Assembly (NCBI RefSeq): GCF_031769215.1
Contig: NW_026781921.1
Location: forward strand, 1,426,001 to 1,490,000
DNA length: 64,000 nt
DNA from: Ylistrum balloti
Taxonomy: Eukaryota
Direction of reading: 5' to 3'
A model generated the notes under the pieces. It was given only the letters and a program-made list of their open reading frames with translations. It searched no databases and was not told where the DNA came from. Below are positions 6,746-21,909 of the stretch, one piece after another (the first letter of the stretch is position 1; every line of letters starts with the position of its first letter). The translations under genes were made by a program, and so were the position numbers.

Positions 6746-6946
6746 TCATCTGCTGAGGCTGTGAGAGCGCTCCCGGTCGCCATCGTTAGTTGTCTCTTCT
6801 TCCGCTTTAACTTGATATTTGGCAAAGACACGATGCATCATGGCCTGCTTGAGGGTTAGTCGTTCAGCTGGGTCATACTCAAGCATCTGATTGATGAGAT
6901 CAAACAAGTCGCGATGATCAGGGTTTTCTGGGTCTCTAAGATACCG
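6746..6946 (-). CDS. CLK2: Alternative terminal exon S (canonical end): RYLRDPENPDHRDLFDLINQMLEYDPAERLTLKQAMMHRVF...DRERSHSLSR*, 66 aa
   Basis: Acceptor tttgttctttgcag|CGG, phase 0. Encodes subdomain XI (MLEYDP..R.T). The RERSHSLSR terminus resembles my recollection of the Drosophila Doa C-terminus. Confidence 0.93.
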   Translation of the reverse strand, partial: RYLRDPENPDHRDLFDLINQMLEYDPAERLTLKQAMMHRVFAKYQVKAEEETTNDGDRERSHSLSR

Positions 6947-10008: not shown

Positions 10009-12555
10009 TCATACAGTCTCTATCCCACTAGATGGATTAGATTGCGGTCCTCCATCCGGTGCTTGTGTTGTGTAGACCGGATCACGTTCAACAGTGTTAT
10101 CACAACCAGAAGGCAAAATGACCGACACACAATTGTCAGCATCGTCTATAACCAAATGCTCGCCACCAGAATTAGTCCTTTGAATATTCTGAATGGAGTT
10201 GGAATCTGCTACTGAGGGAGAGCCAAGGTCAGACATCACAGGACTGTTTGGAGTTTTACCTGTGAATATATTGCTAACAGCGATACCAGAAGGCAGAGGA
10301 GAAGCATGAACCCGAGACGGCTCATGCAGCACCAGTTCGCCTTCCACAACACTGGGATCGGGATCTGGGTCAAGGCCCACTTCAGATAAAAAACACTGCT
10401 CTGATGTGGGTGCCTGTTTTTTACTCCGTTTCCTGTGTGCACGCTTAGCAGTTTTCTTCTGTGTTTTATTCTGAGCTTCCTCAACCTTGACCTGAGTGTC
10501 ACTGTCCAAGGGTGTGTCTGAGAGAACAGCTGTGTAGGCCACAATGGGAGGTTTCTGTATTGGGGATGGTTCAAGAACCATGGTTTGAGTTGGCAAAGTC
10601 ACCATATTCCTTGTATCAGTGGGATCATACACCAATGCTGCTGGCTGCTCTAGCACTACAGTAACAGTATCGGGTGTTGGATCAGTCACAGCAATCACTG
10701 GAGTAGGATTGGCCACTGCGATGACAGGCGGGGGAACTGTCACCGTCATCACAGGCCCTGCAGGATTCATCTCTACAATGGTCTTGGCGGTGTCTCTGAC
10801 TGCCTCCTGCTCACAGTCAGCACCTTGGGATAAAAAACCTTGCTGTGAATCTGTCTGGCTGGTATCTTGCTGTTCTACATCTCCTCCCACTTCTGTGTTA
10901 CATACAGTGCTTGTCTCGCCTTCTGTTTCATTGTTGCTGAGATTAGTTTCAAACGAAAAAGCATTAGCTCCTGATGAGGCAGTGTCAGGGGCCTCTGCAG
11001 AGGATGGAACCTCAATAATGGGGCTAATCGGCTGGTGCTGTGACATATTTAAGAAGACACTTGGGGTAAAAGTCTGGCTTAGCAACAGCTTGAGTGGATC
11101 TTCCTCAGGCTTCTTCTCCTTTTCTTTAGGAACTTTCTCTGGTTCTGACCAGGATCTTTCCGTCACTTCCACTTTGAGATCTTGTATTGGCCCTTTGACT
11201 GGTTCTTCTGGTTTCTGCTGGTGATTAAGCTCGGATTTTGACCTATCTACAGAGACAGGCTTAGCCAGTGCAAGCTTGAGCAGTTGATATGCTGACAGTG
11301 GTTTCTCTTCTCTTTTTGGGACGGGTTCCACTTCCAGTTCTTCCTCATGTCCAGACACATGCCCAGACTTTCTACGATCACCTCCTCCACGCTCTCTTCG
11401 CCGACGTTGGAGACGTTCAGCAACTGTTTCTTCAGGGTCGAATCCAGGTGACTCACCTCTCTCAGAGATGGAAGTTTTTCGACTAGTTGACTCATCAAAA
11501 CTGTCAAAGCTTGCAGGCTTTTCTATTTTGTGTGTACTAGATTCATCCTTATGTGAACTACTGTCTTCAGACCCAAACATCTGTCTCCAGGTTCGGATAG
11601 CTGATCCCTTGTCCATTCGTGATGGAGACACAACTTTGACCTGTAATCTGTCAGGTGACAGTTGCTGTTGTTCCGGAACCCTCTCTACAACCTCCTCTGC
11701 TGGCTGTTCTTCCTCCATGTTCTCCTCCATTCTTTGTCGCCATGATTTCCTTCGAGTAAAGGCATCGTAAGTCTTTGGTTCCTCAGCAGCTGGTGAAGCC
11801 TCTTTTTCTTTTTTAGGTAATGTCAATTCAAGATGCTCTGGTTCAGCAACCTCTAGCTCTTTCTTCTGTCTCCATGCTTTAATGCTGAGCACCTCTGGCT
11901 CCGCGGCCTTGGTATCCACCACCGTTGTAGTCTGCTCTGTTGGTGGATTAGAGGCATAGTCATCCTTGGGTTTCTCTGTTTCACTGGCCATTTCCATCTC
12001 AAGTTTGAGACGCCATGACCTTGGCTTGTTAGGATCCTTAGGAGGAGACATTTTTGCTTGTGCTTCTGCAGCCTTTCTTTTCCTTTCTTTGTATGTTACA
12101 TAGCCACTTGTTTTCTCTGGTAGTACCTTGTTTGGCGTTTTCTGTTTCTTTGGAACCACCTCTGGAACTTTCTCCTCTACTTTCATTGGAATATTTTGTG
12201 CCACCTCTTGACTAGAACTCAGCTCTGTATGGTTCTGTTCAACATGGCTCACCTCACCAGAATCTTCCCTAGATTTGGCAGCTGATCTTGACCGGCGTTC
12301 TGAGGATTCCCTTTGTGATCCATTGGTTGGGACAGTCAGTTCTGCCATCTTTCCTTCTTCTAATGAAGCTGATTTTTTCCTCTCGGCTGGGTTGTCTAGA
12401 GGAAGACGTTCTGCATAAAATTTCCGACATGGACCAAAGAACGGATGGTTCATTGCCTCTCGTAAAGTAATGCGTTCCTCTGGTATGTACTCGAGCATCA
12501 TCTCAGTCAACTCAATCAGTTGCCGATGTTCTGGCCCCTTGTCTCGAATGTAATG
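10009..12555 (-). CDS. CLK2: Alternative terminal exon L: HYIRDKGPEHRQLIELTEMMLEYIPEERITLREAMNHPFF followed by an ~800-aa E/K/P/S/T-rich disordered tail (848 aa total, ends GIETV*)
   Basis: Acceptor ttgttgtttttcag|CAT at 12556-12558, phase 0. The stop-free 2547-nt frame is GC-richer than its surroundings. Its first ~40 aa align with kinase subdomain XI. Confidence 0.85.
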   Translation of the reverse strand, partial: HYIRDKGPEHRQLIELTEMMLEYIPEERITLREAMNHPFFGPCRKFYAERLPLDNPAERKKSASLEEGKMAELTVPTNGSQRESSERRSRSAAKSREDSGEVSHVEQNHTELSSSQEVAQNIPMKVEEKVPEVVPKKQKTPNKVLPEKTSGYVTYKERKRKAAEAQAKMSPPKDPNKPRSWRLKLEMEMASETEKPKDDYASNPPTEQTTTVVDTKAAEPEVLSIKAWRQKKELEVAEPEHLELTLPKKEKEASPAAEEPKTYDAFTRRKSWRQRMEENMEEEQPAEEVVERVPEQQQLSPDRLQVKVVSPSRMDKGSAIRTWRQMFGSEDSSSHKDESSTHKIEKPASFDSFDESTSRKTSISERGESPGFDPEETVAERLQRRRRERGGGDRRKSGHVSGHEEELEVEPVPKREEKPLSAYQLLKLALAKPVSVDRSKSELNHQQKPEEPVKGPIQDLKVEVTERSWSEPEKVPKEKEKKPEEDPLKLLLSQTFTPSVFLNMSQHQPISPIIEVPSSAEAPDTASSGANAFSFETNLSNNETEGETSTVCNTEVGGDVEQQDTSQTDSQQGFLSQGADCEQEAVRDTAKTIVEMNPAGPVMTVTVPPPVIAVANPTPVIAVTDPTPDTVTVVLEQPAALVYDPTDTRNMVTLPTQTMVLEPSPIQKPPIVAYTAVLSDTPLDSDTQVKVEEAQNKTQKKTAKRAHRKRSKKQAPTSEQCFLSEVGLDPDPDPSVVEGELVLHEPSRVHASPLPSGIAVSNIFTGKTPNSPVMSDLGSPSVADSNSIQNIQRTNSGGEHLVIDDADNCVSVILPSGCDNTVERDPVYTTQAPDGGPQSNPSSGIETV

Positions 12556-12793
12556 CTGAAAAACAACAATACAATACACAATATACGACTGGAAGTAAAC
12601 GCTGGAATTTTTTTTTATATATAAAATTTTGAAGAATTTACATAAACCATTTTCATATTTCTCACAAGTATTTTGAAATATCTTTAACAATTGTGATAAT
12701 TTTCATATAAACAATAAACTTTCATTAACAATCACATAATATATTGTTGAAATTTATTTGAACTTATTTAAAACTCTTCATCATAGCAACTAT

Positions 12794-13262
12794 AATAAGA
12801 GACCCCAGAGGGATTTTGGCGTCCACTATCATATGGTCTAAACTGTTCCTTTATCAGTTGCATTTTTCCATTATATTTTCTCCTTTCCCATCCCTTGAAA
12901 AATGTATGCAAAGGCGGAGACCAAGAAGAACCTAAATATCAATTTTGATAATGATTAATCCAAATCATCTATAGATATAATTAGAAGGGGTTGAGGGTAG
13001 ATATGTCTGAGAAAGACACATCCAATACTTATAAAGAAATAGCAAAAACAAACTTGACTTTCAAAACTGAACATGGCAGCTTGTGGACCATTTTGTTTCT
13101 TCAATCAGTCATGAAACTGAAGATGAAGCTTCCTATGAGATTCAAGAAAGATCAATAAAAAAAAACAGGAACAACAAGAATTGTTAAAGGATGGATGGAC
13201 AACAGGTGGACAATGGACCACAAAGGCGATTTGAACAGCCAACCATCTGATGGCAAGCTAAA
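12794..13262. mobile_element. Degraded non-autonomous dispersed element
   Basis: aataagagaccccagaggg start; ggatggatggacaac microsatellite and gcta end, the same architecture as 7541-7796. Confidence 0.4.
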
Positions 13263-13649
13263 ATTTCTCTCTTTTTCTAAACAAAGGATGACATAATTTA
13301 TCAACTTCTAATCAACACAACATCAATTTCTTTTATTGATTTTCAAAAGAATAAACATGATTGATACAGTTACAATGTGTAAGATCATGATGTGTACTAC
13401 GCCCATAAGTTAATGACATAAGGAAACTGTAAAGAAACAAGATAATCTATTTAGTATATGTTCTTCAGATATTGAATCTAATTGGCAAAAAGTTCATCCA
13501 TTAAGAAATGCTATTTGCCAGTACTATAACAAGCTTCTATTGGTGTCACTACCACCTCTTTAATTACTGACACTTACTGATGTAAACACGCTCATTAATG
13601 ACCGTCATTAACTGGTGAAATTCCGCTAACTAACGACTATCATTAATTG

Positions 13650-15460
13650 TATAGACCCCCTAACTGCCTGTAATAACAGACTAAAGTAAGGATAGTGTTA
13701 TAACACTGATACAGTGATATACAGACCCCCTAACTACCTGTAATAACAGACTACAGTGAGGATAGTGTTATAACACTGATACAGTGACTAGGATATACAG
13801 ATCCCCTAACTACCTGTATATACAGTGACTAGGATATACAGACCCCCTAACTACCTGTATATACAGTGACTAGGATATACAGACCCCCTAACTACCTGTA
13901 TATACAGTGACTAGGATATACAGACCCCCTAACTACCTGTAATAACACACTACAGTGAGGATAGTGTTATAACACTGATACAGTGACTAGGATATACAGA
14001 CCCCCTAACTTCCTGTATATACAGTGACTAGGATATACAGACCCCCTAACTACCTGTAATAACACACTACAGTGAGGATAGTGTTATAACACTGATACAG
14101 TGATATACAGACCCCCTAACTACCTATAATAACAGACTACAGTGAGGATAGTGTTATAACACTGATACAGTGACTAGGATATACAGACCCCCTAACTACC
14201 TGTATATACAGTGACTAGGATATACAGACCCCCTAACTACCTGTAATAACACACTACAGTGAGGATAGTGTTATAACACTGATACAGTGACTAGGATATA
14301 CAGACCCCCTAACTACCTGTAATAACACACTACAGTGAGGATAGTGTTATAACACTGATATAGTGATATACAGACCCCCTAACTACCTGTAATAACACAC
14401 TACAGTGAGGATAGTGTTATAACACTGATACAGTGACTAGGATATACAGACCCCCTAACTACCGGTAATAACACACTACAGTGAGGATAGTGTTATAACA
14501 CTGATACAGTGACTAGGATATACAGACCCCCTAACTACCGGTAATAACACACTACAGTGAGGATAGTGTTATAACACTGATACAGTGACTAGGATATACA
14601 GACCCCCTAACTTCCTGTATATACAGTGACTAGGATATACAGACCCCCTAACTACCTGTAATAACACACTACAGTGAGGATAGTGTTATAACACTGATAT
14701 AGTGATATACAGACCCCCTAACTGTATATACAGTGACTAGGATATACAGACCCCCTAACTACCTGTAATAACACACTACAGTGAGGATAGTGTTATAACA
14801 CTGATATAGTGATATACAGACCCCCTAACTACCTGTATATACAGTGACTAGGATATACAGACCCCCTAACTACCTGTAATAACACACTACAGTGAGGATA
14901 GTGTTATAACACTGATACAGTGATATACAGACCCCTAACTACCGGTAATAACACACTACAGTGAGGATAGTGTTATAACACTGATACAGTGATATACAGA
15001 CCCCCTAACTACCTGTATATACAGTGACTAGGATATACAGACCCCCTAACTACCTGTAATAACACACTACAGTGAGGATAGTGTTATAACACTGATATAG
15101 TGATATACAGACCCCCTAACTACCTGTATATACAGTGACTAGGATATACAGACCCCCTAACTACCTGTAATAACACACTACAGTGAGGATAGTGTTATAA
15201 CACTGATAGGGTGACTAGGATATACAGACCCCCTAACTACCTGTAATAACACACTACAGTGAGGATAGTGTTATAACACTGATATAGTGATATACAGACC
15301 CCCTAACTACCTGTAATAACACACTACAGTGAGGATAGTGTTATAACACTGATACAGTGACTAGGATATACAGTGGCTAGGATATACAGACCCCCTAACT
15401 GCCTGTAATAACACACCACAGTGAGGATAGTGTGATAACACTGATACAGTGACTAGGATA
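13650..15460. repeat. Modular satellite with 41-, 70- and 76-bp unit variants
   Basis: Modules tatacagaccccctaactacctgta, ataacacactacagtgaggatagtgttataacactga and tacagtga(ctagga). Confidence 0.96.
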
Positions 15461-17536
15461 AATAAAGTAATTCAGATACTAACCATGGAAGTAAACACTT
15501 GGTTTACACATATTATTAGTGTTACTTCAAGATGATCAAAACACATGCCTTGTCTCCTTCTACAGAATCAAGAAAATAGCCTTCAATGATGCACATATAT
15601 CATTCCGGTCCAATGCAGAATTAGTAGGCATGCCAGCATAGCAAAATCGCCGAGGACACACCCGCACAAAAAAAAAATATCATACTTCATCCTGCTGTCC
15701 TCTTCCTGGCCAGTGTACGAACATGGTAGAACACCAAACTGTGGTACAGAGCTGCTTCAAGGTAAAGCTCAATGAAGATTGCACACAAAACTGGCCTTCA
15801 TAACAAACATTGGAGATGCTTTTATTTCAAAATTTCACACCTGTATCAAAATCAGTCTGGGATCTTGCAAAAGGGATAAAATCATGTTTTTTGATAAACT
15901 ATTCCAGTTTTCAAAAGCAGTGCAAAAATTTCTCAACTGAAGCACAACCTAGCTTTCACAAAATAAAGTTTCAAACCATTCATCAGACAATAAACCAACT
16001 ATATTGAACGGCACACAACATTCAAAAACGGGGAGAAATCTGCAGTGATAGTTTAATTGTTAGTAGGTATAAAAGACGATTTGTGCATTGAGCATAAACT
16101 GAGTTTTAATCAAAAGAAACTAGTTTACCCATCTGTCAATGCCCCCTTCAAAAGTCCATCTCTCCAAGCATACTCACTGCTGTTTCATTTCATTCATGTG
16201 TTCCGATCTCACAAAATATTAACATTTTTTTTCGACATTTATCATTAGGTCCTTTTTAACGTAAAAAAAATTCAGACTAAATCAATGGTTACAATGTGGA
16301 AACACATCATTACAAATATTGAAATAGGAATGAAGACATGAATAGGGTTGATTGTGATGGAAATACAGCACGCACCCTAATCGTTCACGAAAGTCTGATT
16401 TATATACATCAATTAACAGTCAATTAGTGTTTTCAATTCAAATCAACGACACCAAAGGAACCATTGATTTCTTTTTCCTTCTTTTGTGAAAAACTCTTTT
16501 TTTCCTGAAGTTTCATTCATATCAAAAGTCTTCAATCAGTCTTTGATCTTTATGTAATGCATTGGATTTCCATGTCTTTGACTCCTAATTTCTTGACTTT
16601 GTCAGTAAAAGTGAATTATAAGTAATTAATCATCATTTTCCATAGTAGTAGCAATCATACAAATCCGTCTCCAGACATTCCATCATTTTTTCCATGACCT
16701 GGTCAAAATTCAACACCAATATTAATAAGGACAACAGGTCCTGAAGACGTGAATCCCTAATCAGAGAACAAAGAATGCTTTCAAATATCACAGGTTTTTT
16801 ACAGTTACATAAAACCATAAATAATTTCAACATAAGTGAAATACATTTATATGGTTACTTTGGCATGATAACATAGGTATGTAATTATGTGTGTGTAAAT
16901 ATACAAAACTCATGCATATGCCAAAATGTGTCTGTCACAAAAGCTACAATTAATAAAAAATATCCTCCACATTTAAACTCAAATATATTTCAGAATACAC
17001 CGATTGAAAACTAAAAACACCAATAAAAGTTTAGTGTAAATATATACTGCAGGGATATGTACTGACTACATTGAAAATTAAAACATGAATACAAAGATAC
17101 ATATTTTGTCATCATAATTAACCCCAAGGTATATACTGTTTAGTATTCATCTGCTACTTCTTTGTAGAGAGCGTGGAAAGGTGGGGAAGGTAGGATTTTT
17201 TGTATTTGTATTTTGTATTTTTGATGAAAGAATATGCAATTTCTGCGATGGTAAATTTGATCACTTACTAGAATTACATGGTATCTATGTCAAAGAGATT
17301 ATCTCTAATATCCATCTTCCACAAGTTGTATTTGACATAGGTAAAAAAAAAAAACCTTTGTCTATCAACGCTGTAGATATTTCTGCTAGGTTTGATTTTA
17401 ATGAGAGCAGACCTTTGTTTCTGCAGCCCATTATAAACACTTATCACCAAAATATTCCATCTTAAATATGCAAATGTTTGCATAAAAACGATGGTAAAAT
17501 CTTGATGATTTGCCTCGGGAATGGTGGATTCCTTAC

Positions 17537-17627
17537 CTCCAAGGGCTTGCAGCTTTCTCTCACGTACCGCCCTGATGAACTTTTCGAATCCCAGTCTAAC
17601 CGCCCCTTGTAGAAATACTTGGACTTC
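17537..17627 (-). CDS. CLK2: Mutually exclusive exon B: (K)[30 protein letters not shown], 91 nt
   Basis: ttacccctcttaag|G ... GAG|gtaagg. Phase 2 in, phase 0 out. Confidence 0.9.
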
Positions 17628-18526
17628 CTTAAGAGGGGTAACAAAAATAGAGCTTGGTGAGAGACAATACACACTCACATGCTCCTATCCACATAATCCA
17701 AGGCTACTCAATATCATCAAATTACCTCCCTTTGTGGCTCAAACCCTTCACTCTAGTTGCCTTCATCAAATAATTTTTCTTCTCTTCCTTAATTTTAGTG
17801 AATCTATAAATCCATCCATAAAAATGTTTGTTTAATTTGCAGTATTGCTGACTATAAGGAGGGCGAGTAGGTACTTTGATGTTAGTGCTAACCCTGGATC
17901 TGTGGGCACTCTAACAATATGCTCGGCTATACAAACATGCAAGCCTTACTGCTGACAAGTTCCATCGTCTTTTGTTTAATTCAGTAAAGAGATTCTCAAA
18001 TTTGGAAAGCATTGAAAAATTTCCAAATTTAAAAAACTACAATTACTTTGAGATTAATTTGAAACAAGTGTTATCACTCTGGAATTTGTCAACAGAACAT
18101 CATCACAGTTTTAACATCATGCCTATTGCAAGCAAAATAAAGCATTCCAAGATCCCATTTTGACATCCTTGGATTACAGACAAGGAAATGTCTAACCGCT
18201 GAGCTAAAATTACTTTTTTTTTTCTCTCTTTGACATACATAATTCAAAGTCTGTATCGTCAAGTTTTTCTCTTTTCAAATTTGATATATGGTCAAAAATG
18301 ACAATGCTACAAATGAAGCTCAATGACTTTCCTGTCACCCTTGTACAAATACCAAAAGTGGATCTTTGAAAAATAAAATCATTCTCTACCTAATGAACTG
18401 AACAAAGACTGTTGAGAACAGTACACAATGCGCAGGCATGAACAGACAATGGCAGGCTGAGAGATGACGAGTGAGTATTCAACATCAGGCGGATGGGCGG
18501 CAGGGCAGGTGTCGGACGATACTTAC

Positions 18527-18614
18527 ATACAGCGGCCGACAGTTTTCTCTCACATAACGCCCTGCGGACGACGTATGGTCCCACTCTAGGCGGCCGTGCC
18601 AGAAATTATTTGTT
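18527..18614 (-). CDS. CLK2: Mutually exclusive exon A: (K)TNNFWHGRLEWDHTSSAGRYVRENCRPLY, 88 nt (absent from the ORF track in this frame)
   Basis: Pyrimidine tract ctctctctcctccctatcaaag|A and donor TAT|gtaagt. Phase 2 in, phase 0 out. Clear paralog of exon B. Confidence 0.88.
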
Positions 18615-20556
18615 CTTTGATAGGGAGGAGAGAGAGCAAACATGACTAGGTGTGTGTGTCAAGTGGGTCGTAAACACAAAATACATTCTATAATGCCATT
18701 TAAGTTGTTTTCATTCCCAGAATAAATTTTGATCAATCTGAATGATACTTTTACAGCGTTTCTACCACAGGGTCTAGATGATAAAAAGAAAAGCACTGAT
18801 CTAACTATGCTTAATGCCTATCAATCTAAGCTCCGACATATATCAACAGGGCTTACATTAAAATTTCAAAATTCTAAAATATCAAGCTCCAAATCAAAAG
18901 TTAAACAAATATTTTAATTTCTGAATTCAGTTCTAGTCTATCATATATGATTTCTTCAGGAAGTGTTTTTAATCACCTACTTAATCTATTGAAATAGAAC
19001 ATCAGCAATACTAGAAAGTTTGCTATCCTCAATTTAACATTTACACTTTAGCATTATGTGCAGTGTGCCTATCTATGCAGAATAAAGCTGAAAAAGTAAC
19101 AATCCAAAATATTACTGCCTAAAAGTATTTTTATCTAATTTTAAGAAGCATTGACAGAAGTTCCCACTGATTAAATTTGAATTCCAGCCAAATTTTGATG
19201 ACAACAAAAGAAATCTGAAGTATGAAGGATTCTTAATGAAGAACAATATTGTTTTTTTTTCTGATCAGCTAAAACAAATTAAATCAAATAAGACCAAACC
19301 AGTGAGTACATGGGGCAGATTGTAAAATCAAAATATCCATGGGTTGAAAGGTCATTAGAGCAAAGGTCAAGCCACATAGGTCAGTCAGCATGTGCAATGA
19401 TCCCATACATTTATATATGTATATATAATAAAGAGTGTAATTAAACATGTAACTCACATAACAACATTTCATAAACCATTACTTCAGTCACCTTCTGTGT
19501 CAAATTGTTCATAACGGAGAATTAGGCAGATTTTTAATAAATCTAGCTTTTTGAAAACGTGCATTTCTACACAATAGGTCAATTTGATATTGTTTGCCAA
19601 AATTTTACTTACATATATTTTTAAGTTGCTTTCAAATTGAATATTAAATGCCAAATGAACAAGTTTTTCAGAAAGCTTTATTTTGCTGAATATTTGTGAA
19701 GCTTGAACGGCTTTGTTTGAATCAAGCTTCTAAAGCTGCAAAATTTGCATATAAGCATTAGGACACATATTTAACTTTGAAAGGTACTGGTGAACTAGGG
19801 GTTTACTGAATGAAGAACAAAAGAGATACAAGTCTAATTTAGATACATACAAAATTTTAGTGCCCACCATGACATTTATACCGTTTGTTATAATATTAGT
19901 TCCGAATAAGCCAAATTTACTCCCAATTAATAGCAACATATTCAATATTTTTATATAGACAAATTTCTGAACAGTTGCTTTTATTTATCTGTGTAAAAAT
20001 GGAAATGAAGGTTTTATATAAAATAGATTCATCCAATTATCCAGTTACAAAATAATACCAACATTTTCTTTTTGATTAATCAAAGACTTTTCCAATTATA
20101 TTTAAAACATAAATGCACAATTTTGAGTAGTCTATACTGCTATCTCAATGACTTATCCTCGTGTAATCATTATGTTTATCAATCCTAAAATTTTGTCTTT
20201 TTTTTCTTTACATATTTTAATAATTTGTTGGGTTTTTTTTTTTAATAAAAAATCTACATTTGACAAGACGAATAAGTCTGATAACCCAGCATTTTGAAAA
20301 TATCGAACTGATCTAATATTAGGGGAAGATTAAGGAAGCTATAGAAATTTGATCAAAATACGGAAATGAACGAGTGAAGAAATCCTTAATTATTACACTT
20401 CTGGCAGTGTTTTCACTCAGCTATACAAGATTTATACCCAAAAAAAGGGCCGTGTATTCTATATCAAAATGGACAGAAGATACCCTTGGAAAGTCTTGTA
20501 AATAAGGATAAGTGATTGCCCTATGTGCAGACACAAGACAATAGTGAAATACTTAC

Positions 20557-20636
20557 TTTGTCTTTTTCACCATTCGGTAGGGCAGTGATCCCAGAATCCG
20601 CTCCATCATTGCTAGATGCTCTTTGTTATCATGAGT
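20557..20636 (-). CDS. CLK2: CLK exon [26 protein letters not shown](K), LAMMER signature, 80 nt
   Basis: ctgcag|ACT ... AA|gtaagt; [11 protein letters not shown]. Confidence 0.98.
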
Positions 20637-20845
20637 CTGCAGCATATAAATTTAAGTCTTTAACATCTCAACTAACATAATTATCTCCCTTTACTTGTTT
20701 GCTACAACGCATGTGGAATATCTGCACTAGTATGAAAGTTTACCTCAGAGAGTCAATTTTTTAATCCATTTGTAAGTTTGTATATTAACCATGAAATAAT
20801 TTTGAAATATTTTGTAAGGCTTATCTGTTCGTAAAACATAATTAC

Positions 20846-21471: not shown

Positions 21472-21722
21472 CTACAGAAAGAAAAATATGGTTTTAAGTA
21501 CACTCTCATATACAACTAACCAATAGTAGGATTTAAATGTACCTCAATTTTCCCCAAGAAAATAGGACAAATACAGCATGATGACATGTCCATTAAGTCT
21601 GCAAAAAAGGCAACTAAAAGCAAGGATTCTACGTCCATGAAGTATGAGTAAGGTTTAAATGTATGTGATTTTCAGCAAAATGGTTTTATTACAACCTTTA
21701 ATGATCACTATCATCTACTCAC

Positions 21723-21817
21723 CTTTCGTGCATTGAAGGTGACATCTGCATCTGAATTAACAAACAGTATATTCTCTGGTTTCAGATCTGTGTGGGTCAG
21801 CTGATTCTCATGCAAAA
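21723..21817 (-). CDS. CLK2: CLK exon [31 protein letters not shown] (catalytic loop), 95 nt
   Basis: ttgcag|TT ... AAG|gtgagt; HTDLKPEN. Confidence 0.97.
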
Positions 21818-21909
21818 CTGCAAAACAGAACAAACATCCTGAATCACTGACATGAAAGATAATTAAATCAATTTCCATTATGTACTCAACATTTTTGTTT
21901 CCAAATCAT

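Follow-up and report, generated by a model that had tools for sequence, protein, structure and literature searches.

A tandemly duplicated exon pair, probably spliced in a mutually exclusive fashion, in the CLK (LAMMER) kinase gene of molluscs

Kinases of the CLK family regulate alternative splicing and also sense temperature. The window analyzed here—a stretch of 64,000 nucleotides from the scallop Ylistrum balloti (contig NW_026781921.1, positions 1,426,001 to 1,490,000 of the forward strand), within which all positions below are counted—carries the only CLK/LAMMER kinase gene of this scallop, on the minus strand. Downstream of the exon that encodes the LAMMER motif, this gene holds two short exons of similar sequence, termed A and B in the following. 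Do these exons serve as alternatives, so that each message takes one of them, and what would such an exchange change in the kinase? A sequence-only reading of the stretch had proposed a swap of this kind. As detailed below, A and B very probably form a tandemly duplicated, mutually exclusive exon pair in the single mollusc CLK (LAMMER) gene. A literature search found no paper that describes this pair, and a phylogenetic CLK survey from 2025 contains no mention of one (PMC12795684). The pair is apparently undescribed, whereas the kind of event is well known.

The gene and its two copies of one exon

The open reading frame at 10009–12555 matches the RefSeq protein XP_060084793.1 (LOC132564128) with 100% identity. 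Orthologs of this protein are present in Pecten maximus, Mizuhopecten yessoensis, and Argopecten irradians. The exon map used here was obtained from the exact spliced alignment of the RefSeq protein (P0001) with the window. The LAMMER signature of helix αG—a motif of 11 residues—is found exactly in the exon 20636–20557 and in the RefSeq protein. In the catalytic loop, HTD replaces HRD within a stretch of 10 residues (open reading frame 21711–21878 and RefSeq protein), which is a CLK feature (PMC2667211). Compared with the PDB, the kinase domain of the Mizuhopecten protein that carries B and the terminal exon S gives CLK2 as best match (E 1.8e-174), followed by CLK3, CLK4, and CLK1. Judged by these sequence marks, the gene product is a CLK/LAMMER dual-specificity kinase, and the 2025 survey lists a single CLK copy for molluscs (PMC12795684). 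The features on which the following analysis is built are:

20557–20636, minus strand: upstream constitutive LAMMER exon; ends with AA of a Lys codon and provides the shared donor for exon A or B; exact spliced match to the RefSeq protein
18527–18614, minus strand: exon A; 88 nt, apparently of derived type, net charge +1, AAG acceptor and GTAAGT donor; in all scallop RefSeq models
17628–18526, minus strand: intron between A and B; 899 nt, with partly conserved blocks and a candidate conserved hairpin
17537–17627, minus strand: exon B; 91 nt, canonical CLK2-like, net charge +4, AAG acceptor and GTAAGG donor; absent from the Ylistrum RefSeq model
10009–12555, minus strand: exon L; alternative copy of kinase subdomain XI and a tail of ~800 aa; phase-0 acceptor, takes A or B
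6746–6946, minus strand: exon S; short C-terminal exon of the canonical CLK2 type, with a phase-0 acceptor; absent from the Ylistrum RefSeq model

Exons A and B have 17 of 29 residues and 60 of 88 bases in common. When either peptide is searched against the window by tblastn, just these two copies are returned, with cross-matches at E-values of 6e-11 and 1e-10. The sequence-only reading had described them as paralogous exons of 88 and 91 nt, which both run from phase 2 to phase 0 and both use an AAG acceptor. Coordinates, lengths, and paralogy (17/29 residues, E of about 1e-10) are borne out, and phases and acceptors are confirmed by reading the sequence: exon A is bordered by tcaaag at its acceptor and gtaagt at its donor, exon B by cttaag and gtaagg. 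Among the 11 acceptors of the RefSeq model, nine are CAG, one is TAG, and a single one—that of exon A—is AAG; the acceptor of exon B is AAG as well. The terminal exons L (start at 12555) and S (start at 6946) both begin in phase 0.

Exon A had furthermore been called invisible among the open reading frames. It does sit in an open reading frame of 52 aa, which is below the cut-off of 60 aa; however, it is used by every scallop RefSeq model. Exon B lies within a 70-aa open reading frame and is missing from the Ylistrum RefSeq model. The unannotated parts of the Ylistrum gene are therefore exons B and S, with exon A being annotated. For the four scallops and Ostrea edulis, all RefSeq isoforms retrieved contain A only; these models come without exons B and S, and their gene names are misleading. 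The GenBank model OWF49171.1 of Mizuhopecten (P0009) is the sole scallop model with the orthologs of B and S, and its use of B may stem from a homology-driven model. In a few species, the pair has already been captured by automatic annotation.

Several automatic names given to long-tail CLK isoforms (P0002, P0003, P0130, P0134, and P0414) lead away from the family: STE20-like, Nek5-like, cyclin-dependent kinase-like 5, titin-like, and axoneme-associated protein mst101(2)-like. In the GenBank annotation of Pomacea, exon S is called as a separate gene of 68 aa (L005 39352–39558).

Conservation and age of the pair

The Ylistrum locus was compared with its orthologs in Pecten, Mizuhopecten, Argopecten, Ostrea edulis, and a gastropod, Pomacea canaliculata. 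All six molluscs share the order LAMMER exon, A (88 nt), B (91 nt), L, and S, with intact AG and GT sites. The acceptor of exon A is AAG in six of the six species; exon B departs from AAG only in Ostrea, where it has CAG. The decay of exon A in related species that the sequence-only reading had allowed for is contradicted by its intact length and splice sites in the five other molluscs.

Pooled over the four scallops, pN/pS amounts to 0.062 for A and 0.071 for B, and the substitutions are nearly all synonymous. By this measure, both exons are under strong purifying selection in scallops. The peptide of exon B is identical in three of the four scallops, and most of the surrounding intron has diverged. 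In a four-scallop alignment of an 8-kb stretch, the blocks with at least 85% identity across all four species are the exons, 40 to 50 nt upstream of each, and one intronic block; at a lower threshold, weaker conserved blocks are also seen.

In an exhaustive profile search with the A+L peptide, A-type sequences are confined to molluscs among the hits with E < 1e-30. Their bearers in this search comprise the bivalves (scallops, Ostrea, and Tegillarca) and the gastropods (Plakobranchus, Pomacea, Littorina, and Gigantopelta), to which look-up adds Magallana, Sinanodonta, Ruditapes, and Mercenaria. Annelids, brachiopods, arthropods, and vertebrates, on the other side, have a single canonical exon, and exon B is similar to it. 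From these comparisons, B seems to be the conservative copy and A the derived one. As bivalves and a gastropod have A and B in the same order, the duplication goes back at least to the bivalve–gastropod ancestor. Dating by cross-species alignment, as had been suggested, hence succeeds in placing the duplication before the bivalve–gastropod split, whereas a tree of 31 columns—which supports the mollusc A-type group at 97/91—is too short to place it relative to other phyla and cannot date beyond molluscs.

The CLK2-like protein of the nemertean Lineus longissimus (P0032) and a Logan protein of unknown taxon (P0053) bear a single annotated exon that is A-like. This exon starts with G-Y-F-W-H-G, is one residue shorter than B, and falls inside the A clade of the 31-column tree. 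The A-likeness of the nemertean exon may reflect either convergence or an A type that is older than molluscs.

Other elements of these loci deserve a description of their own. In the B–L intron of Ylistrum, a block of ~90 nt at 15565–15655 (minus strand) shows 81 to 86% all-four identity in scallops and has no Rfam match. Within it, TACTAAT, a pyrimidine run, and TAG are present, and a less strongly conserved stretch ending in GTAAC comes next. The block might be the 3′ splice site of a small exon, either one missing from the annotation or a poison exon, or else have a regulatory role. Identical or near-identical open reading frames of 31 to 32 aa recur in the same intron (13967–14065, 14569–14667, and 15324–15419, minus strand), which suggests a repeated element or minisatellite. 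In Argopecten irradians, the LAMMER exon occurs twice with 100% identical protein at a distance of 945 nt (L003 73218–73295 and 74163–74240), and the RefSeq protein (P0004) shows an odd junction just before the LAMMER exon. The double exon points either to a local duplication of recent date or to an artefact of the assembly.

Transcripts and the choice between A and B

The lengths of A and B are both of the form 3n+1; hence, exactly one of them keeps the frame. With A alone or B alone, joined to either L or S, the message is open to the normal stop. Double inclusion of A and B leads to a stop 44 nt into L or ~11 nt into S, and skipping of both to a stop 40 nt into L or ~91 nt into S.

Messages of both types can be appreciated in oysters. 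In the Logan assemblies of oyster RNA-seq data, one contig contains A (L006, run SRR12614109) and eight contigs contain B (L007–L014, from eight runs). Pairwise comparison of L006 with these eight gives 36 mismatches and a 3-nt gap in the 88-nt block versus 2 to 12 mismatches across the other 1.3 to 1.9 kb, and the flanking exon sequence at both junctions is identical between the A and B contigs. Two Magallana gigas UniProt isoforms, 449 and 450 aa long and different from each other only at residues 353–381, match the proteins of the oyster contigs in 439/440 (protein of L006, UniProt entry P0415) and 362/363 residues. For Pomacea, the difference between the RefSeq isoforms X1 (1166 aa) and X3 (1167 aa) is confined to residues 310–338.

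The 5′ end of L006 (1–455) is unlike that of the B contigs, and an MRVD-type, RS-poor N terminus is found in the Ylistrum RefSeq protein and in several oyster cluster members.

For scallops, protein-database searches with the Mizuhopecten B+S protein returned no scallop-derived fragments, and the cluster listings contain no Logan members from scallops. The preferred explanation is weakened by this lack of a scallop transcript and by the scallop and Ostrea RefSeq isoforms, which are A only. The mutually exclusive use proposed by the sequence-only reading is nevertheless supported along four lines: the frame logic, the exact lengths and splice sites in six molluscs, the purifying selection, and the transcripts of oyster together with the isoform pairs of oyster and Pomacea. 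We infer that Ylistrum itself uses both A and B.

The choice between A and B is accompanied by that between L and S. The combination A+L is present in RefSeq of many species and in the full-length Logan transcripts P0287 and P0425, and B+S in many species and the eight oyster contigs. These two are the commonest combinations among annotated or assembled mollusc proteins, and it could be argued that A with L and B with S are fixed two-exon modules, with only two proteins being made. However, A+S is seen as a transcript in the oyster contig L006 (P0419) and in models of Ruditapes, Mercenaria, and Sinanodonta, and B+L in gene models only, namely Pomacea RefSeq X3 and models of M. gigas, Mytilus edulis, and Pinctada. 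As all four combinations thus occur among mollusc models, a strict coupling of A to L and of B to S is not supported, and fixed modules appear unlikely.

The terminal exons show variations of their own. In Ostrea edulis (L004 42289–44822 and 45806–45815), L is an internal exon joined to the acceptor of S; S is then read in a shifted frame that meets a stop after 10 nt, which places this stop in the last exon. The L frame of Ylistrum closes with GTA TGA (10009–10014), and GTATGA might act as a donor. No AATAAA or ATTAAA follows the L stop within 700 nt, whereas one such signal lies 457 nt after the S stop.

How the exclusive choice of A or B could be enforced is a separate matter. In messages that end with S, a frameshift stop is located in the last exon and would be exempt from the exon-junction rule of nonsense-mediated decay; hence, the frame alone may not enforce exclusivity. 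Steric exclusion is rejected as the A–B intron is too long—899 nt here and 501 to 922 nt in the other five species. An incompatibility of U2 and U12 introns is rejected as well, the donors at 20556, 18526, and 17536 being GTAAGT, GTAAGT, and GTAAGG and thus all of U2 type.

RNA structure was considered in addition. Among 15 conserved intronic pieces, RNAduplex gave no convincing docking/selector pairing: the best of 105 pairs reaches z = -3.3, and no block pair stands out after multiple testing in these four closely related scallops. A pairing of the region upstream of A with that upstream of B rests on an ACAC/GTGT run that is lost in the other scallops and was discarded. An Rfam scan of 12500–20700 gave just a sub-threshold histone stem-loop match on the opposite strand. 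The A–B intron itself holds a hairpin with arms at 18095–18080 and 17964–17949 (minus strand), ~14 pairs, a 115-nt loop, and a fold z-score of -2.85. Across the four scallops, one of its pairs covaries (U-G, C-G, and U-A), and Argopecten has two mismatches. The hairpin might be regarded as a candidate regulatory element for which the evidence is thin.

The weak AAG acceptors point to a regulated competition. In such a process, the donor at 20557 would be joined to the acceptor of either A or B, with the two weak acceptors competing for this one donor and splicing regulators picking the winner. The chosen exon would then be joined to the phase-0 acceptor of L (12555) or S (6946), and frame disruption would remove or disable the products of double inclusion and of skipping.

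The same features can be read as an unproductive-splicing switch, by which—besides or instead of the making of two proteins—the kinase sets its own level. The early stops after both double inclusion and double skipping would fit this, as would AAG acceptors in A and B that are weak and unlike every other acceptor read in the gene. However, a pure poison-exon role needs no two copies under long and strong protein-level selection, and the proteins retrieved, in searches not designed for such products, include none with double inclusion or skipping. We consider a switch of this kind quite improbable. It is hardly credible that scallops make no message other than A+L and carry exon B, together with S, as a leftover of the ancestral gene that has fallen out of use. 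All RefSeq isoforms of Ylistrum, Pecten, Mizuhopecten, and Argopecten are A+L, and the protein-database searches returned no scallop fragment with B; but exon B keeps its length, acceptor, and donor amid a diverging intron, with a pN/pS of 0.07 and the same peptide in three of four scallops, exon S is intact, and B is found in oyster transcripts and in a Pomacea model.

The exchanged surface and its possible meaning

If A and B are a mutually exclusive pair, as we favor, the exchange concerns a defined part of the kinase fold. In CLK1, the LAMMER motif (386–396) resides in helix αG and is buried by the insert 400–432 (PMC2667211, Bullock 2009). This insert bears a two-strand sheet (409–418), the strictly conserved Trp419 on αG, and the CLK-specific helix αH (424–432), which covers the would-be docking groove of SRPK1 (PMC2667211). 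Anchored on the conserved Trp, exon A or B corresponds to about CLK1 407–437 and thus to the sheet, the Trp, αH, and a few residues beyond. The earlier assignment to the MAPK-like insert holds for the second half of the insert and for αH, which pack on the LAMMER helix αG, but not for the whole insert.

Both exons keep the L-[DE]-W-D core and the stretch G-R-Y-V-R-E. They differ in the first strand, where B has a Lys-rich start and is one residue longer and A starts with T-N-x-F, and in the loop after the Trp, which is a charged (E/S/Q)-(K/R)-S-S in B and (P/H)-(T/L)-(T/S)-(S/P) in A. The last residue is Tyr in every A-type sequence seen. Across the six species, the net charge of A is always +1 and that of B is +3 to +8, making B more basic by 2 to 7. 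The A+L and B+S kinase domains were modelled with AlphaFold2 from alignments of 12 and 10 rows; with mean pLDDT values of 46 and 54, these models are unusable for a comparison.

The swap would hence give two kinases that differ in ~30 residues of the insert β-sheet, the post-Trp loop, and helix αH, and going by the peptide charges we infer that it alters the charge of the surface around αH. RS-domain substrates are basic before phosphorylation and acidic after it. Altered electrostatics at αH might tune the binding and release of such basic or phosphorylated substrates, or of partners. The known CLK thermosensor is a His in the activation segment, and regions beyond this segment are reported to influence the temperature set-point (PMC12795684). 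It is a possible, if somewhat doubtful, reading that the A/B swap is a tuning device that provides different substrate or partner docking or different temperature–activity set-points—and, with L and S, four CLK enzymes from one gene that are deployed by tissue or temperature. If true, the αH region would be one of the "regions outside the activation segment" that set the thermal profiles of CLKs (PMC12795684).

CLK genes are themselves subject to much alternative splicing, and isoform changes of other kinds are known for this family. The isoforms of Drosophila Doa and of C. elegans CLK change the N terminus. In vertebrate CLK1, exon skipping truncates the kinase. None of the described CLK isoforms is known to swap a piece inside the folded kinase domain, as the mollusc pair would. 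The MAPK-like insert is itself a divergence hotspot, and it harbors a splice site whose conservation extends from Drosophila to human (PMC12795684).

Comparable exchanges are found outside the CLKs, among them that of the JNK kinases. Their isoforms with exon 6a or 6b differ in substrate binding. Like A and B, exons 6a/6b of JNK (MAPK8/9/10; exon pair discussed in PMC1874599) are a tandem pair that swaps a short C-lobe segment of a CMGC kinase at near-equal isoform length. The segment is another one, with mollusc CLK exchanging αH and the sheet of the insert. Exclusivity in JNK is tied to an incompatibility of U2 and U12 introns (PMC1874599), whereas mollusc CLK has three ordinary GTAAG donors of U2 type. 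The catalogues of tandem-duplicated exon substitutions describe adjacent, homologous exons of the same phase and near-equal length that are ancient and conserved and leave the proteins identical except for one homologous stretch, as A and B do (PMC9741552; PMC9013439). These catalogues cover human and other model genomes, whereas the pair described here belongs to molluscs. Homologous alternative exons with long introns between them are shared with Dscam, 14-3-3, and ATE1, in which the choice is controlled by competing RNA structures (PMC7797038). Unlike in these genes, no conserved docking/selector complementarity was found among the conserved intronic blocks of the scallop CLK genes, where the local hairpin of the A–B intron is the sole candidate.

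The A/B pair offers a natural probe for what αH and the conserved LAMMER region beneath it do in these kinases. Molluscs have kept two versions of this αH/LAMMER-covering piece in one gene since before the split of bivalves and gastropods, so that nature itself supplies a paired comparison of one kinase bearing either of two surfaces, whose main difference is their charge. A comparison of A and B could thus reveal the binding partners of this surface and any shift of the temperature set-point in these cold-blooded animals.
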